Of a stretch of 64,000 nucleotides of DNA, positions 2,890-27,784 are shown piece after piece. A program made the translations under genes and the position numbers. Numbering within the stretch: the first letter of the stretch is position 1; each line of letters opens with the position of its first letter. The notes beneath the pieces are model-generated. The model searched no databases. It had not been told where the DNA came from and saw nothing but the letters and a program-made list of their open reading frames with translations. The stretch lies in the sequence record NC_049849.1; one strand, 5' to 3'.

Positions 2890-2910
2890 CCACACTACTG
2901 GAAGATACAC

Positions 2911-2942
2911 AATGCCCGGCGCCTCGATTGGTCCCGGGCATT
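2911..2942 (+). terminator. stem-loop, possible intrinsic terminator
   Basis: AATGCCCGG ... CCGGGCATT inverted repeat in an intergenic gap, short T tail. Confidence 0.4.
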
Positions 2943-2955
2943 TGTCATTCGTGCA

Positions 2956-6551: not shown

Positions 6552-9500
6552 ATGCTAGATAAACAGTTCAAGTACAAGATTCCTGACCACGACGAGAAGT
6601 CGTACCAGCTGTCATTGAGTCGCTGTTCCAACTGGAGCAGTGGCAAGGAGCGTACTCTGATCGTATTGCAGACCGTGCCGACTGAGAGTCTGTCGAGCGG
6701 TGTGCTGATGAGCAAAGGCTTGGTGGCGAACACCATCAAGAACTGCATCAACTTCTCGAAGGAGAATGCCAAGAAGCATTACGGTGTCAGCTTCAACAGC
6801 ACGTATGCGGTCGTTAACTTCAACAATCGCAAGCACATGCACCTCAAAGGCCAAGGCCGTCAGGATGCAGAGGTTGAGTTCGGCAAGCGGCTGAAGAGCA
6901 TCATCAAAGACTTGAAGCCGACGCGCATCTTGGTGTCTGGTGATATCGCAGCCGAGCAACTCCTTGCTATTGAAAACCTGGAGTTCAAGCGCGGCTGGAT
7001 TCACGACTACAAGGGCATGACTGTCGTCAATACGCTGGACTTGGATCAGCTGCTGGCGAAGGGCGGTGCTCTTGCAAACCTGCTGGGCTATTGGACGCGT
7101 CACCTTACCAATCTGATGATCGGTAAGAACCCGTTCGATCTGTCGAAGCTCAAGGCTACGGCAATCTATGTAGACACGATTGAGAAGTTTGACCGCATGA
7201 TGGTTCGGTTGAAGAAGGCATCCGAGATTGCCATCGACACTGAAACCAAGAACCTGTCAGTCCTGCATAACAAAATCTATACGATCCAGTTTGCGACTGA
7301 TATCAATCCCGACGAGGGATTCGTGCTGCCGCTATGGCATCCGAAGACTCCCTGGTCGAAAGAAGACCTCAAGTACATTCGCAAGACGCTGCGAGCATTC
7401 CTGTTGAACAAGCATCCGAATGATGCCATGTTTGTGTACTTCAATGGGATGTTTGACTTGCGCATCATGCGTCAGCAGTTCAAGATTCCGATTCTGCGTC
7501 AGCGCACTTGGGAAATCACAGCGGGCGAACACTTGCTCGATGAGAACACCAAGGACTTGAAGAACTGCGGCAAGAAGACGAAGATGAAAGGCTCGGGTTG
7601 CGGCCCTGGCGGTTTGCTGCACACCTATGCACGGTATGGCAACGACCACTACTTGACTGCGGACTTCTCGAAAGAGGAGCGCACGACCACGGGTAACATT
7701 GAACCGTCCGACAAGAACTTCCTGCTGTACGCGGCAACTGACGTTGTGGCATTGCTCGGCATTCGCAAGATGCAGCTCAAGGCAGCGGCCACATACGAAA
7801 TCGAGGGGAAGTCCTACAGGCCGTACTACGAGAAGCACGTCATTCACATGATGGGCTCGACGGCTCACCAGCTGTCGCACCTGATGAATGACGGCTCGTA
7901 CGTTGACACCAAGTACTTGAAGAAGTTGATCGGCAAGGCCTCGCCTCTGCTCAACGAAATCAACAAGGTGCTGGAGAAGATGCGCACGGTGCCGGCCTTC
8001 GTCGATGCCAACGCTCGCATTCTCGCAGCCAATGGCATCAAGGCCAAGTCGCTGTTCGGCGGTCCTGCTCAGTGGGCGTTCGCTCCGTCGAAGACTGCGC
8101 ATCTGCGCGTCCTATTCTTTGACGTGCTGGGGTTGGAATCTGTCGCAGAAACGAAGAGTGGTGCCCCTTCGACCGGCAAGGAATTCCTGAAGCACTACAA
8201 GTCTATTCCTGAAGTCGCGCTGTTCGCTGAATGGCAGAAGATGCAGAAGCTGCTTTCGACCTACGTGAAGGGCTGGGCTCGTCGCATGGGTAAGGACGAA
8301 GACTCATTGACCGATGACTTCATCCGCGCAGGCTATTCGTTCTTCGGCGTGAACACTGGTCGCTTGAACTCGCGTGATCCGAACTTCCAACAGATTCCGT
8401 CGCACGGCGATCTGGCGAAGATCATCAAGCGTCTGTTTATTGCGCCCAAGGGTCGACTCCTCATCCGTTATGACTATTCGGCACACGAAGTACGTGGCTG
8501 GTCGATCATTGCGAAGGACGAGGTACTGGCCAACGCATTCAGGGCAGGTCAGAAGCTGCGTCAGCAATGGATTCAAAGTCCGACTGACGAAGTGAAGAAG
8601 GAACTGAAGCAGAAGGGTGACATTCACATTCAGAACGTGTATCGATTCTGGAAGAAGTGGGTGGGCAAGGACGACCCGATGCGTCAAGCCGTTAAGGCTG
8701 TGGTGTTCGGCGTGCTGTACGGCAAGTCGGCAAAGAGCCTGGGTGTTGATATCGGCGCAGACGAGAAGGAAGCGCAAGCGATCATTGACAAGATGTTCTC
8801 TGAGTTCAAGATGGGTGCTCAGTGGACAAAGAAGATGAAGTCGTTGGCTGAGAACAAGTACTATGTGTACTCGATCATCGGCCGTCGTCGTAATCTCTAC
8901 GCAGGTCTGACTGGTGAGAAGGGAATCATTAGCCAGCAGATTCGTCGCGGGTCTAACGCTCCGATCCAAGGCTTCGCATCTGAAATCGGCATGAAGGCAG
9001 GCCGCATCATCACCGAGTACTACTATGATGACGTGCAAGCGCTGATGCAGAAGTTCGACCCTGACCTTGAGTACGAAGACATGGTGCTGCAAGCTAACCG
9101 CACGGTGCACGATGCGAACTACTACTCGGTGCCGTACTCGATGGTGATTCCATTTATCCACATGCTGCAGCACGGTGCGACGTACGGCGTGGCGCGACGC
9201 ATGGAGAAGGAGTTCGACTTCAAGTTCACGGTCGAGCCTGAAATCGAAATCGAAATCGGCGGACGTGACGACAAGACCTACAAGTGGGACTGGTCGTTGC
9301 CGAACCTGATTGAGTGCATCGAGAAGGCAGTGCATGACACGCACGACCTAGGTCAGCTTGATGGTACGCCGGCCGAGGTGATGGCGAAAATCATGGCTCC
9401 GTATCAAGACTCGAAAACTCGTAAATACCTGCAAGAGAAATATCCCCTGCTTGGTATCACGAAGCTTGAGCCGCAAATCAAATCGGCAGTACCTGACTAT

Positions 9501-9719
9501 CTCAAGCAGTTGGGTACGAAGGTAGATAAGATTTCGGCGCAGGTCGATGACTTGATTAAGCTCAACAAGAAAGCCAAGGACGGAATCTTGAAAGAGAAGG
9601 TCGATGGTAAGAAGGTTGAGCGAGACGTTGGCAAGGAACTGAAGCAGGCTGAAGCTAGTCATGCAGCAGCTCTTGACGATCATCGCAGGTTCAAAGCGTT
9701 GCAAAAGGAAATGGCATAA
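6552..9719 (+). CDS. polA: family A DNA polymerase with 3'-5' exonuclease and N-terminal UDG-like domain
   Basis: ExoI AIDTET, FNGMFDL, YAATD; TGRLNSRDPNFQQIP; motif A YDYSAHEVR; motif B RQAVKAVVFGVLYG; NAPIQG; motif C TVHDA. Confidence 0.92.
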   Translation: MLDKQFKYKIPDHDEKSYQLSLSRCSNWSSGKERTLIVLQTVPTESLSSGVLMSKGLVANTIKNCINFSKENAKKHYGVSFNSTYAVVNFNNRKHMHLKGQGRQDAEVEFGKRLKSIIKDLKPTRILVSGDIAAEQLLAIENLEFKRGWIHDYKGMTVVNTLDLDQLLAKGGALANLLGYWTRHLTNLMIGKNPFDLSKLKATAIYVDTIEKFDRMMVRLKKASEIAIDTETKNLSVLHNKIYTIQFATDINPDEGFVLPLWHPKTPWSKEDLKYIRKTLRAFLLNKHPNDAMFVYFNGMFDLRIMRQQFKIPILRQRTWEITAGEHLLDENTKDLKNCGKKTKMKGSGCGPGGLLHTYARYGNDHYLTADFSKEERTTTGNIEPSDKNFLLYAATDVVALLGIRKMQLKAAATYEIEGKSYRPYYEKHVIHMMGSTAHQLSHLMNDGSYVDTKYLKKLIGKASPLLNEINKVLEKMRTVPAFVDANARILAANGIKAKSLFGGPAQWAFAPSKTAHLRVLFFDVLGLESVAETKSGAPSTGKEFLKHYKSIPEVALFAEWQKMQKLLSTYVKGWARRMGKDEDSLTDDFIRAGYSFFGVNTGRLNSRDPNFQQIPSHGDLAKIIKRLFIAPKGRLLIRYDYSAHEVRGWSIIAKDEVLANAFRAGQKLRQQWIQSPTDEVKKELKQKGDIHIQNVYRFWKKWVGKDDPMRQAVKAVVFGVLYGKSAKSLGVDIGADEKEAQAIIDKMFSEFKMGAQWTKKMKSLAENKYYVYSIIGRRRNLYAGLTGEKGIISQQIRRGSNAPIQGFASEIGMKAGRIITEYYYDDVQALMQKFDPDLEYEDMVLQANRTVHDANYYSVPYSMVIPFIHMLQHGATYGVARRMEKEFDFKFTVEPEIEIEIGGRDDKTYKWDWSLPNLIECIEKAVHDTHDLGQLDGTPAEVMAKIMAPYQDSKTRKYLQEKYPLLGITKLEPQIKSAVPDYLKQLGTKVDKISAQVDDLIKLNKKAKDGILKEKVDGKKVERDVGKELKQAEASHAAALDDHRRFKALQKEMA

Positions 9720-9732
9720 GCCATTCCTCACT

Positions 9733-9764
9733 AGCGGGACTGCCTAAGCGGTGGTCCCGCTTTT
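9733..9764 (+). terminator. rho-independent terminator
   Basis: AGCGGGAC...GTCCCGCT stem followed by a T-run, just after the polA stop. Confidence 0.7.
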
Positions 9765-9780
9765 ACCCATTGAGGTGTTC

Positions 9781-10404
9781 ATGTTTGGCACAATCACCCT
9801 GGCGTCGAATGGCGGCCTGGAAGTTCTACCCATCTTTAAAAACCATCTGAGTGGCACACATAATCCGGGCCGTCAGAATGGAACCTGGGTCCTTGAAACT
9901 TATGACGAGTCGGCAGAGGTCTACCTACCGCAACGTGATAAGCACGTAACGATCTGGTGCAACGATCCCGAGCACTACTTCTGGACTGAGTACTTGCAGT
10001 CCCAAGAAGCGACGAAAGATACGCAACGCGCAAAGCTACAGAAGGTAGCGCGCAACTTGCCTGGAAACATCAACTACGCTGTACTCAATACCGAAGGCGA
10101 CCATGGGTCTATCTCGCTGTTGACTCCTGAGTACAATGGCGCCGCAATCGCCGTTTCGGTCGTCATCAGTCAGCGCTCAGCTCAGTTGCTGTGGTCGATC
10201 AGTGAAGACGAAGACTTGATCGAAAAGCTGCGCGCAAGCGATCCACGCATGTACTCGATCTACAGGTTCCCCGAAGTCCGCGGCGCCATGTTCATCAACA
10301 CTCTGGCCGTGTGCTCGAAGTGGTGGAAGTGGATGCAGACCTTTGAAGGTAATACGTTGAAGTGCTGCAATGCACTCGAGGTCATGCTGTGTAAGGAACG
10401 TTGA
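9781..10404 (+). CDS. hypothetical protein
   Basis: GAGG RBS before ATG 9781; 207 aa. Confidence 0.6.
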   Translation: MFGTITLASNGGLEVLPIFKNHLSGTHNPGRQNGTWVLETYDESAEVYLPQRDKHVTIWCNDPEHYFWTEYLQSQEATKDTQRAKLQKVARNLPGNINYAVLNTEGDHGSISLLTPEYNGAAIAVSVVISQRSAQLLWSISEDEDLIEKLRASDPRMYSIYRFPEVRGAMFINTLAVCSKWWKWMQTFEGNTLKCCNALEVMLCKER

Positions 10405-14735: not shown

Positions 14736-15301
14736 TTGTCAAACTTTTGGAACTGCTGCATATCTCGCACGAAGAATTTCTGCAGCGCTCGTGTTATACC
14801 GAAGCCGAGTTCAACAGCTGGGGTGAAATCAACGTGCCTCGCCAGGCGTATGTCATCGCAAATCTGATTGCTGCAAATCGCAACCTACAGCAAGCACAAC
14901 GTACGGTGATTCATATCGCAGCCGGCGACGAGAACTGGACGCCTTCGAGTGAAGAGCAGCAACAGTTGGCACGTGACTTCTTCAAGGCGATGAACGAGGG
15001 TACCCCCTTCACCACGCGTAACGGAGTCAAGGTCACGCCTGTGCAAGTCGGCGTCGTGAACAATCTGATTGTCGAACCGCGTGGTGATGAAGACACGCAA
15101 TACGGCAGTGAAGCAGAGCGCGCCATGGGTGGCACGGCGGGTGCCGGAACAGTCATCACTGCGGGCGACGAAACCTGGCAGCCAACGCAAGAGCAGCTCG
15201 AGCAACTCGTGAAAGAGTTCAAGGAAGCCGAGTACGATCCCAACGGCGGCTGGGTCCGTAAGCCGTACACTGTCATCAGCGACAAGAGCAACAACCCATG
15301 A
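14732..15301 (+). CDS. hypothetical protein, possible N-terminal HTH plus duplicated motif
   Basis: Internal repeat AGDENWTPSSEEQQQLARDF / AGDETWQPTQEQLEQLVKEF. Confidence 0.6.
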   Translation: MIVKLLELLHISHEEFLQRSCYTEAEFNSWGEINVPRQAYVIANLIAANRNLQQAQRTVIHIAAGDENWTPSSEEQQQLARDFFKAMNEGTPFTTRNGVKVTPVQVGVVNNLIVEPRGDEDTQYGSEAERAMGGTAGAGTVITAGDETWQPTQEQLEQLVKEFKEAEYDPNGGWVRKPYTVISDKSNNP

Positions 15302-16278
15302 AGCAATACCTTGACACCGTAGAATTCGTCATTGCCAACGGAGTACGGCAGTCTAACCGTACCGGCATCGACACCATTGCATTCCCTGGCGCTTCCATGC
15401 GCTTCGATCTGCGCGATGGGTTTCCTGCAGTCACGACCAAGAAGCTAGCCTTCAAGTCCGTCATCGGCGAAGGCATTGGGTTCTTGCGTGGCGTTGAGTC
15501 AGCCAAGGACTTCCGAGACCTCGGCTGCCAAGTCTGGAATCAGAACGCCAACGAGAATCAGCAGTGGTTGGACAATCCGTACCGCAAGGGTGAAGATGAC
15601 CTCGGCCCGGTCTACGGTTCGCAGTGGCGTCGCTGGAAAGGCACGAAGAAAATCTCGCGCTTTGACAAGAAAGCGAGTCGAGCGGCTATGGACTCGGGTT
15701 GGGAAATGGCTGGCGCCGATATCGCGGCTGAGGACGATCACCACTACTTCTTCTACGAGAAGGAAATCGACCAACTGCAGATGTGCTTGGACAAGCTGCG
15801 CAACAACCCGACCGATCGCCGCATTCTGTTCCACGGCTGGAACCCCGCGGTACTCGATCAAGTCGCACTCCCGGCATGCCATCTGCTGTATCAGTTTCTG
15901 CCGAACGTCGCACAGCGTGAGTTGTCCATGACTTGCTATATTCGTAGCAACGACTTGTTCCTCGGTGCACCGTTCAACATTGCAGAAGCTGCCTGGCTCC
16001 TGTCGTTGTTTGCTCGACTGTCTGGATTCACTCCGCGTTACTTGCAAATCTTTATCGGTGACGCACACGTATACGTCAACCACCTCGACGCATTCAAGCT
16101 TCAGCGCTCGCGTGAAGTCTACGCATCGCCGAAGCTGCAAATCTCTGATGAAGTTCCGACGCATACGCATCCGGCTGCTGAGAGCATTGACGAAGTAGCC
16201 AACCTCATTCGCCCCGAGCATTTCACTCTGGTCGACTATCTCCATCACGATCCCATCAAAGCCGACATGGCTGTTTAA
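15298..16278 (+). CDS. thyA: thymidylate synthase
   Basis: DLGPVYGSQWR, DRRILFHGWNP, ALPACHLLYQF, YIRSNDLFLGAPFNIA. Confidence 0.95.
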   Translation: MKQYLDTVEFVIANGVRQSNRTGIDTIAFPGASMRFDLRDGFPAVTTKKLAFKSVIGEGIGFLRGVESAKDFRDLGCQVWNQNANENQQWLDNPYRKGEDDLGPVYGSQWRRWKGTKKISRFDKKASRAAMDSGWEMAGADIAAEDDHHYFFYEKEIDQLQMCLDKLRNNPTDRRILFHGWNPAVLDQVALPACHLLYQFLPNVAQRELSMTCYIRSNDLFLGAPFNIAEAAWLLSLFARLSGFTPRYLQIFIGDAHVYVNHLDAFKLQRSREVYASPKLQISDEVPTHTHPAAESIDEVANLIRPEHFTLVDYLHHDPIKADMAV

Positions 16279-16290
16279 CTGAGAGCACTA

Positions 16291-16566
16291 ATGCAACCCT
16301 TTCACGACTTCGTACTCATCAAGATCATCGACACCACGACCAAGAGCGCAGGCGGTCTGTACATCGCTCAGCAATCCCGTTCGCCGTACAAGCGCGGTGA
16401 AGTGGTCAATCTCGGCCCGGGTGCTGTGAACTTCAACGGCGTCACCATTCCCATGCAGTCGCAGATTGGCGACGAAGTGGTTTTCAGCTCGGACGTTGAA
16501 ACCTTTACCGAGAACGGCGAAGAGTACACGCTCATCAAAGACGCCTTCATCCTGGCCAAGGTGTAA
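16291..16566 (+). CDS. groES: co-chaperonin GroES (Cpn10)
   Basis: PFHDFVLIK, mobile loop TKSAGGLYI, GEVVNLGPG, GDEVVF, GEEYTLI. Confidence 0.9.
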   Translation: MQPFHDFVLIKIIDTTTKSAGGLYIAQQSRSPYKRGEVVNLGPGAVNFNGVTIPMQSQIGDEVVFSSDVETFTENGEEYTLIKDAFILAKV

Positions 16567-16934: not shown

Positions 16935-16961
16935 AGGGATGTGGACTAGCTCCACGTCCCT
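16935..16961 (+). other. stem-loop (terminator or 5' stabilising hairpin)
   Basis: AGGGATGTGGA-CTAGC-TCCACGTCCCT. Confidence 0.5.
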
Positions 16962-16981: not shown

Positions 16982-17428
16982 ATGGTCTGGCAATCTACCA
17001 AAACGTACGGTCATGAAGTTGGACTGAGCTGCGCATTCCGACAATGGCGCGCTCACTCGCATTGCCGTTTCGTTCATGGGTACGCACTGGCATTCAAGTT
17101 CGTCTTCGAGACTGAAGAGCTGGACAGCACGAACTGGGCAGTGGACTTCGGCGGCCTCAAGTCGTTGAAGCAAATGCTGCAAGACACGTTTGACCACAAG
17201 ACTGTTGTTGCCGAAGACGATCCCGAACTCGAATGGTTCAAGGAAGCAGAGAAGCGTGGCATCCTCGAACTGGTGGTACTGCCGCATGGTGGCTGCGAGA
17301 AGTTTGCAGAGTTCACGTATGAAGCCGCTGAGCAGTGGCTCAAGGATGCGGGCTTCAGTCCTCGTTGCCGACTGGTCTCTGTTGAAGTCTCCGAGCACGG
17401 CGCCAACTCCGCAATCTTCAAGCGTTAA
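16982..17428 (+). CDS. queD: 6-carboxy-5,6,7,8-tetrahydropterin synthase
   Basis: HSHCRFVHGY, VDFGGLK, FDHKT; T-fold size; Que cluster context. Confidence 0.9.
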   Translation: MVWQSTKTYGHEVGLSCAFRQWRAHSHCRFVHGYALAFKFVFETEELDSTNWAVDFGGLKSLKQMLQDTFDHKTVVAEDDPELEWFKEAEKRGILELVVLPHGGCEKFAEFTYEAAEQWLKDAGFSPRCRLVSVEVSEHGANSAIFKR

Positions 17429-17430
17429 TT

Positions 17431-18033
17431 ATGAAACCAATCATTCTTCTGTACGGTGGTGGCATCGACTCGACTACGCTACTGGCGCACCTGTCTAAGC
17501 ACCGTCGAGTATATGCAATGTTCTTTGCCTACGGTCAGAAGGCCGAAGCGTTGGAGCGCGAAGCCTGCAAGTATTTCTGCGAACGCTACCACGCTGAGTT
17601 CGTTGAAGTCAAGCTGCCCATTTCGGAACTCGCGGACTCCGCGATCCTGAACGGCGGTGCTCTGGCTGACAATCCCGCTATCAACATTGTTGATGGTCGC
17701 AACCTGACGTTCATTACCTTGGCTTCGATGTTCGCGGCCAAGGTAGACGTGACTGAGATTGCTGTAGGCTTCCATGTTGAGCCGGTAGCGCGCCCCTTCC
17801 CGGATGCGAGCCCCGAGTTCCTGGATGCAGTTAACACGATGCTGCCGCAAGCCTTCGTACACAAAGCTCAAGTCGTTGCTCCTTTCAAGGACATGACCCG
17901 CGCTGAAATCTTCCGATACGCGGATTCGATGGACTCAGAAATTCTGGCCCAAGCACATACGTGCTATGAAGACGTACCCGGTGGTTGCGGCAAGTGCAGC
18001 CACTGCCTAATCAAAGCAGAACTAACGGAGTAA
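17431..18033 (+). CDS. queC: 7-cyano-7-deazaguanine synthase
   Basis: PP-loop GGGIDS, FAYGQ, VDGRN, YPD-like FPDAS, zinc cluster TCY...CGKCSHC. Confidence 0.88.
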   Translation: MKPIILLYGGGIDSTTLLAHLSKHRRVYAMFFAYGQKAEALEREACKYFCERYHAEFVEVKLPISELADSAILNGGALADNPAINIVDGRNLTFITLASMFAAKVDVTEIAVGFHVEPVARPFPDASPEFLDAVNTMLPQAFVHKAQVVAPFKDMTRAEIFRYADSMDSEILAQAHTCYEDVPGGCGKCSHCLIKAELTE

Positions 18034-18036
18034 TCC

Positions 18037-19317
18037 ATGTGTGGCATCATCCTCGCAGCCGGTCCCAAGTATCTGTCCGGCGGATACATGAGCACTCAAC
18101 TGAGCCATCGTGGTCCTGACGCAGACACCGCAGGCGTGAACGGCAACGTATTCATTGCGCATCGTCGCTTGGCTATCGTTGACACTACATCGCTGAATGC
18201 TCAACAGCCACGATTTAAAGCGCAGCAGTACGCTTGCGTTTTCAACGGCGAGCTTTTCAACTACAAGAAACTGACGTGTGGTTCCGAGATTGAGCTGATT
18301 TCGGAACTGCTGTATGCTGGGCACGATCTGAGTCAGATACTCAATGGCTACTACGCCGTCGCCATGCACGATATCTCCCGCAATCGCATCACCCTGGCTC
18401 GCGATATCTTTGGCGTCATGCCTTTGTTCTATGCGAAGTACGAGGGTTCCTTCTTTGTCGCGTCTGAGCGCAAGGCAATGTATGCGCTGGTTCCCGAAGA
18501 CAAGATCAAGCCGGTGCCTGCTAACACTCGCATCGACTACTGCTTGAAGACTCGAAAGCTCACGTTCACCAAGTACACGCAGCCTTGGACGTTCAATCTG
18601 CCGGGCGTCATCTACGGCCCGTACGAAAGCCACACGGCTCAAGTCTTTCTCAATGCAGTGCGCGAAGTTGCACAGCATAGCGATAACGGATTCTCGGTTG
18701 CTCTATCCGGCGGCCTGGATTCGTCGTTGGTTCTGGCAGCGTGCCGTGGCTTGGGTCTGACGCCCACCGCGATTCTCACGACGTACATTGCAGAGACCGA
18801 AACCGAAGAAATGCGCAGCGCCAAGGCTCTGGTCAAGCACTTCAAGTGGGAGCATCTGCATAAGCTCATCAAACTCGAAGAGCCCGACTACGACCTGCGA
18901 CACTGGATCGAAACGCCGCCGAATCCGATTCGTGATTTTGCGTATCGTCGTCATGCTGCAGTTGCCAAGCACAGTCCGAGCAAAGTGATCCTGTGCGGTG
19001 AAGGTGCTGATGAGCTAGGCCTCGGCTATCCTCTAAATGGCGAGTTCAATACCCCGCTCGCACGATACATGAAGAAGGTTTCGCTGTTGAAGTCTCAAGC
19101 TACAATGACGCTCGATCGCGTTAACACGGCTGGTATGCAGTACTCGAAAGAATATCGCGTGCCGTTCCTACATATCCCATTTGTGCAGCACGCGTTGACT
19201 GTCGACCAAGTCGGCAAGACGCACTTCCGCAAGATGGCAACGTATCTTGGGATTCCTGACGGCATCCTACCGAATAACAAATACTCCGATGAAGAACGCA
19301 TCGGTCGAGCCCAATGA
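18037..19317 (+). CDS. asparagine synthetase B-like glutamine amidotransferase
   Basis: N-terminal Ntn nucleophile MCGI, HRGPD, HRRLAIVD, FNGELFN, ARDIFG; PP-loop SGGLDSS; GEGADEL. Confidence 0.85.
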   Translation: MCGIILAAGPKYLSGGYMSTQLSHRGPDADTAGVNGNVFIAHRRLAIVDTTSLNAQQPRFKAQQYACVFNGELFNYKKLTCGSEIELISELLYAGHDLSQILNGYYAVAMHDISRNRITLARDIFGVMPLFYAKYEGSFFVASERKAMYALVPEDKIKPVPANTRIDYCLKTRKLTFTKYTQPWTFNLPGVIYGPYESHTAQVFLNAVREVAQHSDNGFSVALSGGLDSSLVLAACRGLGLTPTAILTTYIAETETEEMRSAKALVKHFKWEHLHKLIKLEEPDYDLRHWIETPPNPIRDFAYRRHAAVAKHSPSKVILCGEGADELGLGYPLNGEFNTPLARYMKKVSLLKSQATMTLDRVNTAGMQYSKEYRVPFLHIPFVQHALTVDQVGKTHFRKMATYLGIPDGILPNNKYSDEERIGRAQ

Positions 19318-20735
19318 AAAACAAGAAACAAGTAGCGACTGTCGAGCATGTTGGCTACGACTTGATGCCCGCCGCTGTAGACTTCTTTGATACTTTTGAG
19401 AGTGTCGGAGTCAAGTACGGCAACAACAAGCAGAGCAAGTGGTGGACTCGCGATCTGCGCGATGGTGTCCATGTCTTCTATCTGCCGGATCGTACGCTCT
19501 ACCGTGGACGTGCCGGAGCGACTCAGTCGTGCATTGCCAGTGTTGAAGTCGATGAGTTCCTTGAGTACTCGTTGCTGAGCAATCCCGAGCTGTACTCTAG
19601 CTGGGGCCTGCGCTACGCAATGATTAGCCCGCCACATATGGGGTTCAAGCCGGCTCCGGTACGCAATCCGCATATCCGTTTGTTCGCGGACTCGGGTGGC
19701 TTCCAGATTCGCCAAGGCGTCACCGACTTCATTGATCCCAATACTCTGGTCGACTTCTACAACAAGACGACTGACATTGGTATCGGCCTTGACGTTCCTA
19801 TGCACCCGTTGCTGTATCCGAAGATGCTGCAGCGCATGGCGCATGTTACCTGCATGAACGGCGAGTACATCAAGAAGCAACTGAACCCTGGCGTCATGCT
19901 GTACGATCTGAACCACGGCATGGACTTGGTCGACCGCAAGGCTTTCCTCGACGTGACCGAAAAGTACGAGCCGCTCGATGGTATCTCGCTGGCTGGTACG
20001 TCGAGCAATGCGCGTGGTGAGTACGGCGTGTCTGCGCACATCGTTAACGGCGTGGTTGGTATCGCATATGTCCTGGCTCGTTCTGCCAAGCGTTATCGCA
20101 CGGCTCACATCCTGGGCACCACGACTCCGTTCTATATGTTCGTGTTCAACGTCATGACTCGCGGCAAGTTCTTTCCGCATATCACATCTGATAGTTCGAC
20201 GTACGCGCAAGCGGCAATCATGAATACGCACTTGATGGGCATCCCCGGCATCAACATGCTGCGACGGAATCCGATGCCGAAGACTGATCTGTCGACTCTG
20301 CCATGCAGCTGCCCTATCTGCCACATGACGAAGTACACGCAGTCGTACGTAATCAACAATCGGTCAAACATGATTCACAGCATCTGGTACTACGTTCAGA
20401 TGATGCGCTACACGGAGCACTTGGCTGACGAGTTCCTGGCAGGCCGTACCAAGGACTTGGAAATCCTGAAGGTGCTCGGACCCTCGACGTTTAGCCCTGT
20501 CCACATGAAGGGTACGATGCGATTCCTACGCGACCTGATCGAGCACGGCTACAACAAGGCTTATGCGAACAGCAAGGACTTCATTCACTCGATGCTGGGT
20601 AAGAAGACCACGACCAATCTCTTTGGTGGCGAGCGTTCGGCTGGAGTCTTACACGGTGATGCCGAACGTACGGACCGCATTCTCACCAGCTACGAAACGT
20701 ACCATAAGAAGACCGGAGTGAAGAAGCGCAAATGA
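19314..20735 (+). CDS. TGT/DpdA-family guanine transglycosylase
   Basis: ADSGGFQ, LDVP, HILG, SDSSTY (nucleophilic Asp), zinc site CSCPIC...H; lies inside the Que cluster. Confidence 0.8.
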   Translation: MKNKKQVATVEHVGYDLMPAAVDFFDTFESVGVKYGNNKQSKWWTRDLRDGVHVFYLPDRTLYRGRAGATQSCIASVEVDEFLEYSLLSNPELYSSWGLRYAMISPPHMGFKPAPVRNPHIRLFADSGGFQIRQGVTDFIDPNTLVDFYNKTTDIGIGLDVPMHPLLYPKMLQRMAHVTCMNGEYIKKQLNPGVMLYDLNHGMDLVDRKAFLDVTEKYEPLDGISLAGTSSNARGEYGVSAHIVNGVVGIAYVLARSAKRYRTAHILGTTTPFYMFVFNVMTRGKFFPHITSDSSTYAQAAIMNTHLMGIPGINMLRRNPMPKTDLSTLPCSCPICHMTKYTQSYVINNRSNMIHSIWYYVQMMRYTEHLADEFLAGRTKDLEILKVLGPSTFSPVHMKGTMRFLRDLIEHGYNKAYANSKDFIHSMLGKKTTTNLFGGERSAGVLHGDAERTDRILTSYETYHKKTGVKKRK

Positions 20736-21337
20736 AAGTAGAAATCAAAACGTTTGAAAACGTGTGGGGCTGCGCTGTATTCAACGCCGAGCTGCATCGG
20801 AAGATGAAGCATCATCATTTGGTGGTCGGCGTCGATACGCTATTCAGTTCCAAATACAAGCCGGTCAAAGGCAAGACCACAATCGTCATCGACAACTTTG
20901 CACGTCTGCGCAGTAGCGGCGTTCCTATCATCGGGTACGAAAAGTCTCCGACGCAGACCTGGGTGAAAGTTAAAGCTAGCTGGAAGAAGCCGAAGCCCAA
21001 CAAGCCCGAGATTAAGAAGCCGGTGTATCTGGCAGGCGAACTCAAGGTGCTGCTCCCTACGGTTCCGCTGATGCTCGAGTATCAAGCCGCCGTGACCTTG
21101 GAGCAGATGGAAGCTCTGGCCGAGAAGTACAGAGCTGAAATCGACAAGCCTAAGAAAGGCTCACACAAGTGGTTGCGTCGTTCGGTCAACAGCACGCTCA
21201 AGGTCCTGGCGCCTGAGAAGTATGACCCCAAGTTTAAAGAGAAGGCCGCAGCTGCTCCTAAGTCCAAGCTTGGTGCCAAGGCGAAGAAAGCGAAAGACGT
21301 AAATACAGAAGTCGCTAAGAGGAAGGGCAAGAAATGA
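20732..21337 (+). CDS. hypothetical Lys-rich protein within the Que cluster
   Basis: Coupled ATGA overlaps on both sides. Confidence 0.6.
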   Translation: MKVEIKTFENVWGCAVFNAELHRKMKHHHLVVGVDTLFSSKYKPVKGKTTIVIDNFARLRSSGVPIIGYEKSPTQTWVKVKASWKKPKPNKPEIKKPVYLAGELKVLLPTVPLMLEYQAAVTLEQMEALAEKYRAEIDKPKKGSHKWLRRSVNSTLKVLAPEKYDPKFKEKAAAAPKSKLGAKAKKAKDVNTEVAKRKGKK

Positions 21338-22182
21338 AAGACGTGATTGTCATTCAAAACGTCGACCGAGTAATTCGACCTAAGGACTATGAAACCCTCG
21401 GCGAGAAGATTCGAGTAACGTCGATCTTCCGTACGATTCAAGGCGAAGGTCCGTATACCGGATATCCTTCGGTCTTCGTTCGACTGTCGGGCTGCAACTT
21501 CGGTAACAAGGCAGAGGACTCCGCGTGCCGTTGGTGTGATACAGCCTTCCAGTTCGATCAAGGCTATGATTACACGGCAGAAGAACTCCTGGCTGCAGTG
21601 CAGAATCAGCCTGACTTCCACGCCTCTGACGTTGTAGTCATCACTGGTGGTGAGCCGACGCTGCAACACAATCTGCTGAAGTTCATGAAGCTGTGCCATG
21701 AGAACGACCTGTCTATGCAGATTGAGACCAACGGCACACAGCCCTCGTTCTACCAGCAGATAGAAGAGCTTGATGAAGAAGGAACCCTGCCTTATACTTT
21801 TGTAGCGAAGGGTACAGGTGTCTTGCACGTCGTGAGTCCCAAAGCGATTTACAAGGCCGGCAAGATTCCGCAACCTAGTCAGCATGTCCTGAAGGCTACC
21901 GCGTGTCTCAAGTTCGTCGTGTCATCTGATCCTGAGAGCCCGCATCACGAAGTGCCCGAGTGGTCGCGTAGTGCCCGCAACAAGTTCCGAAGCATACCCG
22001 TGTATGTTTCGCCCATGGCCGTTTACAAGCGAGCGTACGCTGGTGAAGTCTCATCCATTTGGGACCGAGACCTCATCGACCAAGAGCGCACGGCAGCTAA
22101 CTACGCGTATGCTGCACAGTACGCGATGGCTAATGGTTTCCTGCTATCACTCCAAACTCACTTGTTCACGTCGATACCATGA
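21334..22182 (+). CDS. queE: 7-carboxy-7-deazaguanine synthase (radical SAM)
   Basis: IFRTIQGEG, VFVRLSGC, CX10CX2C cluster motif, VITGGEP, IETNGT, SPK, LSLQTH. Confidence 0.9.
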   Translation: MKDVIVIQNVDRVIRPKDYETLGEKIRVTSIFRTIQGEGPYTGYPSVFVRLSGCNFGNKAEDSACRWCDTAFQFDQGYDYTAEELLAAVQNQPDFHASDVVVITGGEPTLQHNLLKFMKLCHENDLSMQIETNGTQPSFYQQIEELDEEGTLPYTFVAKGTGVLHVVSPKAIYKAGKIPQPSQHVLKATACLKFVVSSDPESPHHEVPEWSRSARNKFRSIPVYVSPMAVYKRAYAGEVSSIWDRDLIDQERTAANYAYAAQYAMANGFLLSLQTHLFTSIP

Positions 22183-22538
22183 ACAACCCCAATCCCTCCG
22201 TTGACGATATATTGTACCTTCTTCGTCGTGGCATCAACGGCGAGGTTGCCGTCACTTACAAAGACTACCCCTTATTCAAGGGACCGAGCCAGTTCATAAC
22301 GTACTTCGGTAACTGCACTGTCGTGTTTTTCGATGACGGCGGCGGATGCCTGAAGTATGTAGAGAGCGCAAGCGACGCGCACGGCAACGTCGCTGTGTAC
22401 TCCGATTGGCACAACGCTTGGCTCGAAGCTAACAAAGACGAAGAAGACGATTGGTTCCGCGATCCCATCGAACTGCTGAGCGACGCTGAATACATTGAAC
22501 TGCTGGACGTGCTCCAGCGCGCAACAAAGAAGGACTGA
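22179..22538 (+). CDS. hypothetical protein
   Basis: Coupled 119-aa ORF. Confidence 0.55.
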   Translation: MNNPNPSVDDILYLLRRGINGEVAVTYKDYPLFKGPSQFITYFGNCTVVFFDDGGGCLKYVESASDAHGNVAVYSDWHNAWLEANKDEEDDWFRDPIELLSDAEYIELLDVLQRATKKD

Positions 22539-22540
22539 AC

Positions 22541-23200
22541 ATGACTTACACTACCGATCACAAGACTGGCCTCGACGTTCGAGCACATCTGATTGAGCAA
22601 GGCGTAGAGACGCCGTTCACTCCGAAGAAGATTGACCAGACGCGCTTGCAAGTTCTGTTTGCAGAGCTGCACCGCGAGGTCGGTCTCGACTTGGCAGACG
22701 ATTCGATCGCTGAGACTCCGCGCCGCCTGGCCAAGCTGTACTCCACGCAAGAGTACTTCCGCGGTCTCGACTACGCGAACTTCCCGAAGGCCACGGTCGT
22801 GGACAACAAGATGGGCTACGACGAAATGGTGGTTGAGCGCAACATCATCGTCAACAGCCTTTGTGAGCATCACTGGCTGCCCATCATTGGCGGCGCTTTC
22901 GTCGCGTACATTCCCGAGAAGAAAGTCATCGGTCTGTCGAAGCTCAATCGCCTCGTTGACTTCTTCTGCCGACGCCCGCAGATTCAAGAGCGCCTGGTAG
23001 AGCAAATCTATCACGCTCTGTCGTTCCTGCTGGAGACTAAGAACGTCGCAGTCGTGATTGAAGCAGAGCATATGTGCGTCAAGACGCGTGGCGTTGAAGA
23101 TGCGTGCTCTGACACCGTGACTTCGAAGCTCGGCGGCAAGTTCCGCGATCCCGCTCTGCGTGCTGAGTTCCTTACTCTTGCCAAAGGACTGCGTGGATGA
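22541..23200 (+). CDS. folE: GTP cyclohydrolase I
   Basis: ETPRRLAK, SLCEHHWLP, VIGLSKLNR, RRPQIQERL, EAEHMC. Confidence 0.95.
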   Translation: MTYTTDHKTGLDVRAHLIEQGVETPFTPKKIDQTRLQVLFAELHREVGLDLADDSIAETPRRLAKLYSTQEYFRGLDYANFPKATVVDNKMGYDEMVVERNIIVNSLCEHHWLPIIGGAFVAYIPEKKVIGLSKLNRLVDFFCRRPQIQERLVEQIYHALSFLLETKNVAVVIEAEHMCVKTRGVEDACSDTVTSKLGGKFRDPALRAEFLTLAKGLRG

Positions 23201-25254: not shown

Positions 25255-25983
25255 ATGAAAAACATTCGTGAACTGTTGGCCCTGCAGTACGCTACCAATG
25301 ACAAGCTGGCCCCTGGCTGGCTCGAACGCTCGGACGTGGACTTCTATTCCGCGATCCGCGATGAAGCAGGTGAACTAGCTGTCTCCGCAGGTTGGAAGCC
25401 GTGGTGGTCGAAGGCTGAGTCGAAGCTGGACCGCGACAACTGCAAGGTCGAAGTCGTTGACCTGCTGCACTTCCATATGTCGGCAGTGCTGCGTGAATGC
25501 TTCGAGCAGGAAGGCGACGAGCTGGAAGACCTGAGCGATGAAGCGCTGAAGCGTGAACTCATCGAGTCGGCCGCCGACAATTTCGAGTACGCCAACTACT
25601 CGAGCATCAACCCGGATCGTACGGACGTTCAGGCTGTCAATGACTACCTGGGTGACGTGCTGTGCATGGGCGCTATCTCTTCGGTCCCTCAGTTGATGGC
25701 TCTGGCTGAACGCTTTGGCATGATTGAGGCTGAGTTCGGTCTGCGCTACATCGCAAAGAATGCACTCAACAACTTCCGCAAGGCTCACAACTACAAGGGC
25801 GATATCGAAGGCATGCCTGCGTATCGCAAGATGTGGTTCGACGGCCAACAGGAAGACAACTACTACGTGACCGCGTATCTGAACAAGCAAGTCGAGAACG
25901 GTAAGACTCCGACCTATCAGCAGTTCTATGACGCAATGGAAGCCATGTATGTCGGAAATTACGACCCTACTCAATTTGCTTGA
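25255..25983 (+). CDS. dimeric (all-alpha) dUTPase
   Basis: AIRDEAGEL, WKPWW, VEVVDLLHF, YIAKNALNNFR. Confidence 0.8.
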   Translation: MKNIRELLALQYATNDKLAPGWLERSDVDFYSAIRDEAGELAVSAGWKPWWSKAESKLDRDNCKVEVVDLLHFHMSAVLRECFEQEGDELEDLSDEALKRELIESAADNFEYANYSSINPDRTDVQAVNDYLGDVLCMGAISSVPQLMALAERFGMIEAEFGLRYIAKNALNNFRKAHNYKGDIEGMPAYRKMWFDGQQEDNYYVTAYLNKQVENGKTPTYQQFYDAMEAMYVGNYDPTQFA

Positions 25984-26269: not shown

Positions 26270-27784
26270 ATGGCAAAGCAGAAAGGTACTGACCTCGACG
26301 GTTACAAGTCGGGCCGCAGCAATGACGACCGCAAGCGTCCTGAAGATATCGTTGACGTACTGAAGGTACCCGACAACGGTGACAAGTGGACCACGGTTCG
26401 TATGATTGGCATCCTCGCCACGTACGCTGGCTACTGGGTCACGACGACGAAGAAGGACGGCAAGGAAGGCACGTTCTACACGCCCAGCCCTTCGTACGAT
26501 CCCGAGTCGCAAGAGTTCGACCGTTCCAAGTATGACCCGTGGCTCGACGCAGCGGATCGTTTGAACACGCAAGATCGCCGAGTCATCAGCCCGCGCCGTG
26601 TGGCATACTCGAACGTCATTGTGCGCGCTGAGCAAAAGAAGGCGCCGAAGAAGAAGCCGAAGCCGACCAAGGCCGAGTTGAAGTCGGGCTTCAAGGATAA
26701 GGAATCGGAAACCTGGACGCCGGTCCGCGTTATGGCGTTCCCTTCGTCGTTGATGAACAAGATCATCAAGTTCAAGAACGCCAACATGGTCGAGACCAAG
26801 AAAGGCGAGAAGGGCTACCATGTCAACGATCCGAAGTACGGCTGCGATATCCGTATCTCCTACGACTCGAAGGCTTCCGGTACTGACAAGTACTCGGTGT
26901 TGATGGCTGATCGCAAGCCCATCACCGAAGAAGAATCCGAATACCTGCTGTACGATATCTCCGAACTGCAAACGGTGCCGGACGAAGCAGAGGTGAAGCG
27001 CGACTTCGAATCGTGGGCCAAGCGTAACGGCATCAAGCTCGGCAAGAACAAGTCGAAGGATGATGACGACGAAGAAGACGATATCGACGAGGACGAAGAC
27101 GACCTCGATGATGACGACGAGCCGAAGTCGAAAAAGAAGGGCAAGGGCAAGGGCAAGGCCGACAAGAAGTCGAAGGGCAAGAAGAAGTCCAAGTCTGATG
27201 ACGACGAAGACGAAGACGAGGATGAAGATGACCTCGACGACGAAGACGACGAAGACGAGGATGACGACGAACCCAAGTCGAAAAAGAAGGGTAAAGGCAA
27301 GCCCGCCAAGTCCAAGAAGTCGAAGGATGATGATGATGACGACGAAGACGAGGATGAAGATGAAGATGAAGATGACGACGATGATTCGGATGACGATGAT
27401 GAGGATGACTCTGACTCGGATGATGAAGACGATGACGACGATGACTCGGATGATGACGAGGACGATGATGAAGATGAGGATGACGACGACGAGCCCAAGT
27501 CGAAGAAGTCCAAGTCTAAGTCGAAAGGTAAACCCGCCAAGGGTAAGAAGAAGTCCAAGTCTGATGATGATGACGAAGACGATGATGACCTAGACGACGA
27601 TGACTCCGATGATGAGGACGAAGACGACGACGAAGATGAGGACGATGAGCCCAAGTCGAAGAAGTCGAAGAAAGCCAAGTCGAAGAGTAAGGAAAAGTCC
27701 AGCAAGAAGGGCAAGAAGTCGAAGGGTAAGAAGAAGTCCAAGTCGGATGATGACGAAGACGAAGACGACGACATTCCTTTCTAA
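26270..27784 (+). CDS. single-stranded DNA-binding protein (T4 gp32-like core) with long charge-block tail ending DDDIPF
   Basis: Core motifs TTVRMIG, YSNVIVR, VMAFPSSLMNKI, NDPKYGCDI resemble gp32; the C-terminal DDDIPF is identical to the bacterial SSB tip; gene lies upstream of recA. Confidence 0.7.
   Translation: MAKQKGTDLDGYKSGRSNDDRKRPEDIVDVLKVPDNGDKWTTVRMIGILATYAGYWVTTTKKDGKEGTFYTPSPSYDPESQEFDRSKYDPWLDAADRLNTQDRRVISPRRVAYSNVIVRAEQKKAPKKKPKPTKAELKSGFKDKESETWTPVRVMAFPSSLMNKIIKFKNANMVETKKGEKGYHVNDPKYGCDIRISYDSKASGTDKYSVLMADRKPITEEESEYLLYDISELQTVPDEAEVKRDFESWAKRNGIKLGKNKSKDDDDEEDDIDEDEDDLDDDDEPKSKKKGKGKGKADKKSKGKKKSKSDDDEDEDEDEDDLDDEDDEDEDDDEPKSKKKGKGKPAKSKKSKDDDDDDEDEDEDEDEDDDDDSDDDDEDDSDSDDEDDDDDDSDDDEDDDEDEDDDDEPKSKKSKSKSKGKPAKGKKKSKSDDDDEDDDDLDDDDSDDEDEDDDEDEDDEPKSKKSKKAKSKSKEKSSKKGKKSKGKKKSKSDDDEDEDDDIPF
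27050..27781 (+). repeat. intragenic low-complexity repeat: alternating Asp/Glu and EPKSKK-led Lys blocks
   Basis: Four GA(G/A)CC(C/G)AAGTCGAA(A/G)AAG units separated by GAY/GAR runs. Confidence 0.85.

Follow-up and report, generated by a model that had tools for sequence, protein, structure and literature searches.

The deazaguanine operon of phage Motura

The window analyzed here, a 64,000-nucleotide stretch of sequence record NC_049849.1, belongs to Achromobacter phage Motura (MN094788.1). Its deazaguanine operon lies at positions 16982-23200, where asnBL, the gene that concerns us, shares a strand with folE, queD and queE as well as queC and dpdA; all features described below are on the plus strand. 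Just 5' of queD, a terminator-like hairpin with an 11-bp stem followed by a T-run (16935..16961) likely forms the boundary ahead of the operon. The first gene is queD (16982..17428), encoding a 6-carboxytetrahydropterin synthase of the PTPS fold (Pfam PTPS, E 1.2e-15), and the second is a variant queC encoding 200 aa (17431..18033), referred to here as queC-prime, that was assigned by Pfam (QueC, E 1.1e-36) and by comparing its motifs with those of reference QueCs. Downstream of asnBL is a gene for a 473-aa dpdA-like homologue of DNA/tRNA-guanine transglycosylases (19314..20735) that carries DSGGFQ along with a zinc site of the form CxCxxC...H. This protein has no Pfam match and only weakly matches the NCBIfam arcTGT model, and a profile built from 7 homologues matches arcTGT 1IQ8 (E 4.3e-11) across 288 residues. 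There follow a hypothetical protein of 201 aa whose C-terminus is rich in Lys (20732..21337) and that is conserved solely in L002, the nearest relative, the radical-SAM CDG synthase gene queE (21334..22182; Pfam Radical_SAM, E 1.5e-11, and annotation), a small protein with a weak Pfam match to DUF7693 (22179..22538), and folE for GTP cyclohydrolase I (22541..23200; Pfam GTP_cyclohydroI, E 7.8e-57).

The open reading frame at 18037..19317 encodes 426 aa (QDH83433.1) and is annotated in the Motura record as "asparagine synthetase B protein". Pfam, NCBIfam, a structure model and residue mapping together predict that the product, AsnBL, is a truncated AsnB-type glutamine-dependent amidotransferase. 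A preliminary description, made from the DNA sequence, had placed the gene between queC and the transglycosylase, and the flanking genes bear this out: asnBL starts after a 3-nt gap that follows queC, with GGAG located 9 nt 5' of the ATG, and ends in an ATGA stop/start overlap with the transglycosylase gene. In Motura, asnBL is a translationally coupled member of an operon with the order queD-queC'-asnBL-dpdA-x-queE-x-folE. A second terminator-like match, at 18708-18726, is merely the PP-loop coding sequence of asnBL.

AsnBL consists of a class-II (Ntn) glutaminase domain at approximately residues 1-190 (18037..18606), recognized by Pfam GATase_7/GATase_6 (GATase_7, E 2.6e-19) and by residue mapping, and a PP-loop ATP-pyrophosphatase, or synthetase, domain at approximately residues 197-426 (18625..19314), recognized by Pfam Asn_synthase (E 1.9e-20) and again by residue mapping. 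All of the motifs reported earlier are present, namely MCG at residues 1-3, HRGPD at 24-28, SGGLDSS at 224-230 (nt 18706-18726) and GEGADEL at 321-327 (nt 18997-19017), and they are accompanied by LDRVN (nt 19111-19125), YRVPFL (nt 19153-19170) and NNKYSDEE (nt 19273-19296), which contains the catalytic Lys415 that is equivalent to AsnB K449. The cysteines of AsnBL (2, 67, 81, 169, 236 and 320) make no CxxCxxC, in agreement with the reported lack of QueC-type zinc cysteines, and the QueC Pfam model, with a cut-off of 22 bits, reaches no more than 16.1 bits (E 0.008) on this protein. The synthetase domain is indeed short. Whereas AsnB is about 550 aa in total, its alignment with AsnBL reaches the Lys449 equivalent and AsnB residues ~460-553 are missing, as the AsnBL chain stops approximately 10 residues past the catalytic lysine. 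The Asn_synthase match spans profile positions 3-138 of 354 only, and alignment with ASNS halts at residue 431 of 561.

An intact AsnB-type enzyme in a phage-only family

The AlphaFold model of AsnBL (pLDDT 92, pTM 0.91) adopts the AsnB fold, and the top Foldseek match is E. coli AsnB 1CT9 with a TM of 0.83. Cys2, R44, N70-G71-E72 and E84 of the glutaminase site correspond to Cys1, R49, N74-G75-E76 and D98 of AsnB. Each of these positions is kept in 45-46 of the 46 family members, with Glu replacing AsnB D98. The synthetase site is retained to the same extent (45-46 of 46) for the PP-loop and, by the numbering of E. coli AsnB, for G347, E348, D351, E352, Y357, R387, E398, R400, K429 and K449; invariant among these are AsnBL S224-S229, E322, K394 and K415, which represent the PP-loop, E348, K429 and K449. 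The family also has invariant residues of its own, namely H214, N296, R305, C320, D360 and, at position 416, an aromatic one, and Cys320 takes the place of active-site Ser346 of AsnB in 43 of 46 members. Median pI is 8.55 for the family versus 6.8 for other AsnB-like proteins, and this basic character could hint at a nucleic-acid substrate.

Given that AsnB and ASNS are its top matches in both structure and sequence, and that the record itself is annotated as such, AsnBL might be thought an asparagine synthetase of the ordinary kind, an auxiliary metabolic enzyme located in the operon by chance. In ASNS, the acidic cluster E348, D351 and E352 binds the aspartate alpha-amino group (PMC6748925). 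The same cluster is retained in AsnBL, so that the sequence gives no sign of an altered substrate pocket. The likeness to AsnB/ASNS (1CT9 and human ASNS 6GQ3) covers the two-domain fold, the Ntn Cys, the glutamine-binding residues, the PP-loop, E348, D351, Y357, R387, K429 and K449. However, identity is only 22-24%, the C-terminus is truncated, and AsnBL scores below the cut-offs of both NCBIfam equivalogs (159 bits against 267.1 for TIGR01536, and 139.6 bits against 499 for NF006949). In addition, the AsnBL proteins form a clade apart from all other AsnB-like proteins in our tree (SH-aLRT 100), with a sharp score gap at the edge of the family, from 132 to 112 bits in one database and from 291 to 254 bits in a second. 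The family is rare and confined to phages: approximately 35 clusters were found among 1.8 billion representatives, and nearly all matches in a scan of metagenome contigs were generic AsnB. A scan of genome contigs gave ordinary AsnB paralogues of ≤31% identity plus a single member of the family from an "Acidimicrobiia MAG", which is the lone match in a cellular-genome record and lies on a contig bearing terminase, Mu-F and capsid genes, indicating that this is a phage contig. Family members are 393-469 aa long among the best 120 matches and best 150 representatives, and no QueC-AsnBL Rosetta-stone fusion occurs among these same sequences. Since queC also lies beside the gene at every independent locus, as described below, the claim that AsnBL is not an ordinary asparagine synthetase is strongly supported, a housekeeping AsnB is rejected, and chance residence of a metabolic enzyme seems to us the most improbable explanation of all.

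A variant QueC is the invariant neighbor

The canonical QueC signature used for comparison was taken from PMC13329287. In QueC-prime the PP-loop reads GGGIDS and not SGGxDS (nt 17455-17472), YGQKAEALE stands in place of YxQxHxxE such that His is replaced by Ala (nt 17530-17556), and FPDA stands in place of YPDC (nt 17797-17808), with the zinc cysteines CY..CGKCSHC remaining intact (nt 17962-18006). The variation is not peculiar to Motura: all 11 of the AsnBL-partner QueCs examined have GGG[IL]DS, Ala in place of His39, and no Cys134, whereas stand-alone QueCs that make preQ0 retain both His39 and Cys134. Such features are consistent with sub-functionalization of the partner QueC. Because it has lost both residues, QueC-prime amounts to a natural experiment on the residues by which QueC may handle ammonia.

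At 15 of 15 independent phage loci, whose proteins share 31-55% identity, queC is located immediately 5' of asnBL on the same strand, and in most of these the stop and start codons overlap. FolE, QueE, QueD or DpdA is encoded nearby in most of the 15. The placement of dpdA differs by locus: asnBL overlaps dpdA in Motura and L002, in L003 and L007 dpdA lies 5' of queC, and in other loci phmmer did not find dpdA near asnBL. No Pfam match to QueF, ArcS, QueF-L or other tailoring genes was found within ~6-8 kb on each side of asnBL, the scan for Motura being of the operon only. The best explanation that we can offer for the invariant neighbor, albeit a tentative one, is that AsnBL is an obligate partner of QueC-prime.

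One form that such a partnership could take is for AsnBL to act as a glutaminase subunit only, passing ammonia to QueC-prime within a complex while its synthetase domain serves as a scaffold or allosteric module. The strict adjacency of the two genes, with usually overlapping stop and start codons, suggests stoichiometric co-expression, QueC requires ammonia, and QueC-prime is without the residues that stand-alone QueCs retain. Nevertheless, the residues for adenylation and for stabilizing the acyl-AMP (the equivalents of the PP-loop, E348, K429 and K449) are invariant in 46 sequences at 31-55% identity, a pattern unexpected for a mere scaffold, and the lack of fusions between QueC and AsnBL in the sequences surveyed also argues against this reading, which we regard as improbable.

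Loss of the two QueC residues is also seen in Gat-QueC, the enzyme of phage 9g and its relatives and of some Crenarchaeota, which yields G+ in place of preQ0. Ala at position 39 together with loss of Cys134 is common to QueC-prime and the QueC domain of 120 of 120 Gat-QueC homologues examined. Like AsnBL, Gat-QueC has an N-terminal GATase_7-type glutaminase (that of 9g also matches GATase_7) followed by a PP-loop ATP-pyrophosphatase, and is found in clusters with FolE, QueD, QueE and DpdA. In the suggestion that AsnBL might amidinate preQ0 to G+ as Gat-QueC does, the comparison is one of analogy only: the class-II Gat plus PP-loop architecture is shared (hhalign probability 98.4% over 317 columns in both domains), but AsnBL is not a Gat-QueC orthologue. 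BLASTP against 9g Gat-QueC aligns just 47 residues around the PP-loop, and AsnBL has neither a QueC domain nor a zinc motif. The C-terminal domain of Gat-QueC is a QueC (PF06508) with C(x)8CxxCxxC, whereas that of AsnBL is of the Asn_synthase type, and clusters with Gat-QueC have it in place of QueC, whereas the AsnBL loci keep a separate queC at 15 of 15.

A strict rule by which loss of His39 and Cys134 marks a glutaminase partner is broken by two kinds of exception. In some phage contigs (L203, L206 and L207), what follows QueC-prime is another PP-loop enzyme of the QueC family, a tandem that fits two ATP-dependent half-reactions split between two enzymes. In one lineage (L210-212) a QueC-prime-type gene occurs alone, and QueC-prime may therefore be self-sufficient. 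The correlation persists but is not absolute.

A candidate reaction for AsnBL

It is most likely that AsnBL puts a glutamine nitrogen onto the phage 7-deazaguanine base that is used to disguise the DNA. That AsnBL is an amidotransferase dedicated to this pathway is strongly supported by the finding that members of a rare, phage-only family are always encoded directly 3' of a variant queC, and by scores under the AsnB equivalog cut-offs. As to the reaction itself, the one we favor, with less than firm confidence, is that AsnBL, as an amidotransferase dependent on glutamine and ATP, turns CDG into ADG ahead of QueC-prime. The Ntn domain would hydrolyze glutamine, and the ammonia would pass through an AsnB-type tunnel to the synthetase site, where the PP-loop domain would adenylate 7-carboxy-7-deazaguanine (CDG, the product of QueE) at its C7 carboxylate, probably as the free base and not in DNA. 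Attack of ammonia on the acyl-adenylate would give 7-amido-7-deazaguanine (ADG), and the step would stand in for the ammonia-dependent first half-reaction of canonical QueC. QueC-prime would then use ATP for the second step, in which ADG is either dehydrated to preQ0 or given a second ammonia to form the amidine G+, and the TGT-family DpdA would swap the resulting base into DNA.

Three reactions had been put forward in the preliminary description: conversion of CDG to ADG, supply of ammonia to QueC, and amidination of preQ0. We rank the first of these highest and pure ammonia supply lowest, the reason in both cases being that no AsnB residue for adenylation varies within the family. To our knowledge, all characterized AsnB-family enzymes adenylate a carboxylate, and CDG and CPH4 are the sole carboxylates that we know of in the 7-deazaguanine pathway. 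The fold is shared (TM 0.69-0.77) with the hydroxyamidotransferase TsnB9 (7YLZ), beta-lactam synthetase (1JGT) and carbapenam synthetase (1Q15), each of which adenylates a carboxylate other than that of aspartate. The latter two synthetases cyclize their substrates and no longer have glutaminase activity; in AsnBL the glutaminase site is intact, and ammonia is thus the expected nucleophile. Canonical QueC (EC 6.3.4.20, preQ0 synthase) likewise has a PP-loop, and its own first half-reaction is CDG to ADG by way of an acyl-adenylate; in a profile alignment (hhalign), its essential Tyr131 aligns with AsnB Tyr357. It differs from AsnBL in using free ammonia with no glutaminase domain, in binding zinc, and in dehydrating the amide onward to the nitrile. 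That QueC uses ammonia and proceeds via ADG has been described (PMC13329287). The fact that canonical QueC already performs the same conversion counts against the assignment to AsnBL, as do the solitary QueC-prime of L210-212, the retained aspartate-binding acidic cluster and the basic pI.

Alternatively, AsnBL itself may form the amidine, making it a non-orthologous archaeosine (G+) synthase and Motura DNA a carrier of dG+. Two routes can be envisaged, and even taken together we consider them unlikely: AsnBL could O-adenylate the ADG amide and displace the adenylate with glutamine-derived ammonia, as in GMP-synthetase-type chemistry, or it could add ammonia to the preQ0 nitrile. The architecture shared with Gat-QueC, the known phage G+ determinant (PMC6884629), speaks for amidine formation, as do the loss of His39 and Cys134 in both QueCs, the lack of Pfam matches to ArcS, QueF and QueF-L among the scanned neighbors, and the family-specific Cys320. 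Yet exchange among Ser, Thr and Cys at position 346 is a conservative swap, and the His39/Cys134 correlation has the exceptions given above. Furthermore, we know of no AsnB-family enzyme that activates an amide or a nitrile, and ATP is not required for a nitrile to take up ammonia, whereas the ATP site of AsnBL is invariant. A related proposition, that QueC-prime and AsnBL together evolved independently as a fourth way of making dG+ in DNA, or as a way of making an uncatalogued 7-deazaguanine derivative, is to our minds somewhat unlikely.

A search of the literature yielded no description of the AsnBL family or of its proposed step, and CmoY was the sole relevant item on AsnB proteins in phages. 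CmoY is an AsnB homologue of the 5-carboxymethylcytosine pathway of Synechococcus phage S-B43 that amidates or ligates a nucleobase carboxylate; the characterized enzyme uses glycine as substrate and acts on DNA, and one CmoY cluster, in which the glutaminase domain is kept, has been predicted to take its ammonia from glutamine (PMC12783734). As with AsnBL in our preferred reading, a phage AsnB-family enzyme has been recruited for a carboxylate on a modified nucleobase, although in CmoY the pathway is that of the cytosine C5-carboxymethyl group. We found no close sequence kinship between the two, and a tblastn search of phages with AsnBL gave only Motura at >60% identity. CmoY provides a precedent for AsnBL acting at the level of DNA, with DpdA inserting CDG and AsnBL then amidating dCDG to dADG. 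The basic pI of the family and the overlap of asnBL with dpdA in Motura and L002 are in keeping with this order of events. On the other hand, the conserved neighbor is queC and not dpdA, which is variously 5' of queC or not found by phmmer, and a queC gene would have no use in such a pathway. We consider amidation in DNA very unlikely, and conversion of free CDG to ADG continues to be the reaction that we favor.

7-Deazaguanine modifications in DNA shield phages against restriction enzymes and, when tested in vitro, also against CRISPR-Cas9, and the list of 7-deazaguanine enzymes encoded by a phage serves as a code from which the base that it carries is predicted. The AsnBL family is absent from that code, and under current rules its phages would be scored as having QueC and therefore dPreQ0. 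Should AsnBL render the pathway dependent on glutamine, it would show how phages cover a very large nitrogen demand: each copy of the 221,431-bp Motura genome contains ~59,000 G, taking the ~53% G+C of the window as genome-wide. If instead AsnBL makes G+, it would be the fourth non-orthologous archaeosine synthase, and ATP-activated conversion of an amide or nitrile to an amidine by an AsnB-family enzyme would be chemistry new to the superfamily; phages would then repeatedly have divided the two ATP-dependent half-reactions of QueC between tandem PP-loop enzymes. Either way, AsnBL and QueC-prime represent a directly testable enzyme-partner pair.

AsnBL in the Motura deazaguanine operon

The window corresponds to nt 1-64000 of the 221-kb jumbo Achromobacter phage Motura (MN094788.1). 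In it, the genes from queD to folE are all co-oriented and tightly packed, with a strong terminator-like hairpin (16935-16961) located 5' of queD. On the plus strand, queD (16982-17428) is followed by a variant queC (17431-18033), the AsnB-like amidotransferase gene asnBL (18037-19317), the TGT-family transglycosylase gene dpdA (19314-20735), a gene for a 201-aa hypothetical protein (20732-21337), queE (21334-22182), a small DUF7693-like ORF (22179-22538) and folE (22541-23200). The asnBL ATG, which has a GGAG 9 nt upstream, lies 3 nt after queC, and the stop codon of asnBL overlaps the start codon of dpdA (ATGA); the gene order therefore bears out the initial placement of asnBL between queC and the transglycosylase. 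The latter has no match in Pfam; a profile of seven homologues matches the archaeosine tRNA-guanine transglycosylase 1IQ8 (E 4.3e-11, 288 residues), and the family retains DSGGFQ and the CxCxxC...H zinc site. Just upstream of the operon, at 15298-16566, are a phage GroES and a 326-aa thymidylate synthase whose residues 2-326 match a 266-position Pfam profile, implying approximately 60 extra residues. A dUTPase is found at 25255-25983 and, together with the thymidylate synthase, places the deazaguanine genes within a nucleotide-metabolism region. Beyond it, at 26270-27784, is an annotated ssDNA-binding protein of 504 aa. Nearly all of its C-terminal half is taken up by stretches of poly-Asp/Glu that alternate with Lys-rich KSKKKGKGK repeats, and this composition shows up as a spike in both AT and GC skew at 26-28 kb.

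The product of asnBL is a 426-aa protein annotated as 'asparagine synthetase B protein'. All of the motifs named in the preliminary description are found where stated (MCG at residues 1-3, HRGPD at 24-28, SGGLDSS at 224-230 and GEGADEL at 321-327), and the QueC-type zinc cysteines are missing as claimed, the six cysteines being scattered with no CxxCxxC motif. Pfam matches are to GATase_7 (E 2.6e-19) and to the first 138 positions only of Asn_synthase (E 1.9e-20); the QueC profile gives E 0.008, under the Pfam cut-off. An AlphaFold model with 46 homologues as input is confident (pLDDT 92, pTM 0.91), and its closest structures are E. coli AsnB 1CT9 (TM 0.83) and human ASNS; TsnB9, beta-lactam synthetase and carbapenam synthetase rank next. 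Together, the motifs, Pfam matches and structural matches confirm the earlier observation. The synthetase domain is indeed short, as AsnBL is without AsnB residues about 460-553. However, mapping onto E. coli AsnB, with sequence and numbering from the 1CT9 alignment, indicates that it ends approximately 10 residues past K415 (AsnB Lys449) and is therefore a minimal yet complete AsnB core.

In the same AsnB numbering, the glutaminase site is kept (Cys1, Arg49, Asn74-Gly75-Glu76 and Asp98, as Glu), as is the synthetase site (the PP-loop, Gly347, Glu348, Asp351, Glu352, Tyr357, Arg387, Glu398, Arg400, Lys429 and Lys449), both in 45-46 of 46 relatives. To our knowledge, every AsnB-family enzyme characterised so far activates a carboxylate by adenylation and channels ammonia from glutamine to it through a tunnel. 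That AsnBL acts purely as an ammonia supply is improbable, because its adenylation site is invariant.

A phage clade tied to queC

AsnBL does not belong with the housekeeping AsnB proteins. Its scores, 159 bits for TIGR01536 (cut-off 267) and 139.6 bits for NF006949 (cut-off 499), are below both thresholds. A search of 5.8 billion proteins returned approximately 47 full-length relatives, which are 409-462 aa long and 31-55% identical, past which scores fall sharply to ordinary AsnB proteins of 500-650 aa. Likewise, a profile search of 1.84 billion representatives gave approximately 35 clusters (393-469 aa) at 291 bits or more, with the next matches at 254 bits or less. In a maximum-likelihood tree the family forms one clade with SH-aLRT 100 against all other AsnB-like sequences. 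Residues invariant in the family and not found in other AsnB-like proteins include N296, R305, C320 (AsnB Ser346), D360, H214 and an aromatic at 416. Motura is the sole member among isolated phages and BFVD. The only match in a 'bacterial' MAG is on the 37.8-kb contig L028/L216 (JBFKVA010000014.1, labelled as an Acidimicrobiia MAG), which carries genes for terminase, a Mu-F-like protein, capsid, QueC, AsnBL, a QueE-like protein and a large D12 methyltransferase, and looks like phage DNA placed in a bacterial bin. Ordinary asparagine synthesis is thus a very improbable role for AsnBL, although it keeps the acidic cluster to which the amino group of aspartate binds in ASNS, and an altered substrate therefore cannot be proved from the sequence by itself.

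In all 15 independent loci with upstream DNA (Motura, L002, L003, L004, L005, L007, L013, L014, L015, L016, L028/L216, the P0037 contig, L197, L199 and L215, the last having the most divergent AsnBL), queC is directly 5' of asnBL on the same strand. Its stop overlaps the asnBL start or lies within approximately 20 nt of it in 14 of them, the gap in L013 being 200-360 nt. The position of dpdA varies: it follows asnBL in Motura and L002, precedes queC in L003 and L007, and was not found near asnBL by phmmer in other loci. Given this constant queC adjacency and variable dpdA position, the functional tie of AsnBL is to QueC and not to the DNA-insertion step. An action of AsnBL on 7-carboxy-7-deazaguanine already in DNA (dCDG), for which the basic median pI of the family speaks (8.55, versus 6.8 for other AsnB-like proteins), is disfavoured by this synteny and appears quite improbable. 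No QueF or ArcS was found within about 6-8 kb each side of each homologue or, in Motura, within the operon.

Several of these loci have features of their own. Directly 3' of AsnBL in L208/L013 (5321-5851, or L013 9305-9835), an ORF of 176 aa has a C-terminus that resembles QueC only in the latter's zinc-ribbon end (Pfam profile positions 170-207 of 210); the ORF may be what is left of a QueC, or a small partner protein with a zinc ribbon. The QueE homologue of L003 (9275-11224) is 640-649 aa, compared to 282 aa in Motura; the extra length and a weak NUMOD3 match point to the insertion of a homing-endonuclease or intein-like element. In the divergent locus L197, a HAD/PNKP-like phosphatase (2464-2928) lies between AsnBL and FolE with overlapping stops and starts. 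The jumbo-phage relative Burkholderia phage BCSR5 (L010) has a DpdA/QueD/QueE/FolE cluster, with dpdA at 8986-10326, in which phmmer detected neither QueC nor AsnBL. Upstream of dpdA, at 6033-8973, are a group-1 glycosyltransferase, a PIG-L-like deacetylase and a weak PAPS-reductase-like PP-loop protein, and this cluster may make a different, further hypermodified deazaguanine; a gene similar to the last is present in L002 (6203-6865).

The variant QueC and Gat-QueC

Canonical QueC is defined by SGGxDS, YxQxHxxE, VPxRN, YPDC and a zinc motif, with Y35, R99, Y131 and Y189 essential (PMC13329287). All 11 AsnBL-adjacent QueCs examined (QueC-prime) have instead GGG[IL]DS, YGQ[KV]AxxxE, in which His39 is replaced by Ala with one residue more, and [FY]xDA, in which Cys134 is gone; the essential Tyr/Arg/aromatic/Tyr set and the zinc site are kept in each. 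His39 and Cys134 are present in stand-alone QueCs of E. coli and of CAjan, Rosebush and phiSM, phages with measured dPreQ0 or dPreQ1, and also in QueC* of the dADG-phage CPt10. Both are missing from Gat-QueC, the glutaminase-QueC fusion of 9g, PaMx25 and Quinobequin, and from 120 of 120 close homologues examined (YG[SC]RA, YPDN). Loss of the two residues thus correlates with a class-II glutaminase partner, fused or adjacent, although not absolutely. A reciprocal scan of IMG/VR found QueC-prime followed by a second QueC-family PP-loop protein without AsnBL (L203/204, L206 and L207), QueC-prime alone in one lineage (L210-212), and Gat-QueC followed by a second QueC paralogue (L209 and L214).

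The tandem PP-loop genes are at 3639-4331 in L203/L204, 3563-4297 in L206 and 2375-3109 in L207, the second QueC being divergent. In L209 (1114-2691 and 2968-3666) and L214 (1128-2720 and 3001-3711) the second QueC is approximately 300 nt downstream of Gat-QueC, and small HAD-like ORFs lie between the two. These arrangements suggest that phages commonly split or duplicate the QueC step; we found no discussion of tandem QueC-superfamily genes in phages in the searchable literature. In two syntenic phage contigs the gene at the QueC position is not the same: L210 (2986-3708) has a stand-alone 240-aa QueC-prime, whereas the L213 version (2347-3675) is 442 aa long and extended by 218 residues at its N-terminus. 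No glutaminase domain was matched by Pfam in this extension, which begins MSG rather than MCG, so that a correctly called start would mean that there is no Cys nucleophile.

Gat-QueC of phage 9g is the known determinant of dG+ (PMC6884629) and consists of GATase_7 joined to a genuine QueC domain that has the zinc cysteines. AsnBL was rejected as its orthologue, as their BLASTP alignment covers only 47 residues around the PP-loop, whereas Motura QueC and the QueC domain of Gat-QueC share 27% identity when aligned. Nevertheless, profile-profile comparison matched AsnBL and Gat-QueC with 98.4% probability over 317 columns covering both domains, indicating that the families are remote homologues of the same architecture. 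The main rival explanation, that AsnBL itself forms the amidine as a Gat-QueC analogue, is a possibility we consider rather unlikely.

Proposed role of AsnBL

QueC makes preQ0 from CDG via 7-amido-7-deazaguanine (ADG), each of the two steps being ATP-dependent and the nitrogen coming from free ammonia (PMC13329287). CDG is the obvious carboxylate of the 7-deazaguanine pathway, AsnBL lacks none of the residues for hydrolysing glutamine and for adenylation, and QueC-prime has lost residues kept by ammonia-using QueCs. The best-supported explanation, which we favour tentatively, is that AsnBL would amidate CDG to ADG with glutamine nitrogen, and that QueC-prime would perform the second ATP-dependent step, giving preQ0 or, with a second ammonia, archaeosine (G+). 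The recurrence of tandem PP-loop enzymes in other phage clusters fits such split half-reactions. CmoY is a precedent, being an AsnB homologue that acts on a nucleobase carboxylate in phage DNA modification and retains the glutaminase domain in one clade (PMC12783734).

A full-text literature search for asparagine synthetase-like enzymes in the phage deazaguanine context returned only the CmoY paper as relevant. Neither of the two main phage 7-deazaguanine papers (PMC6884629, PMC10516641) mentions Motura or any asparagine-synthetase-like enzyme, the word 'asparagine' is absent from the 2026 QueC-family survey (PMC13329287), and a jumbo-phage survey notes only the presence of a deazaguanine system in Motura. 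Within the searchable literature the AsnBL family is therefore undescribed; in it, a distinct clade confined to phages has been recruited from a known enzyme superfamily into a pathway that is likewise known.
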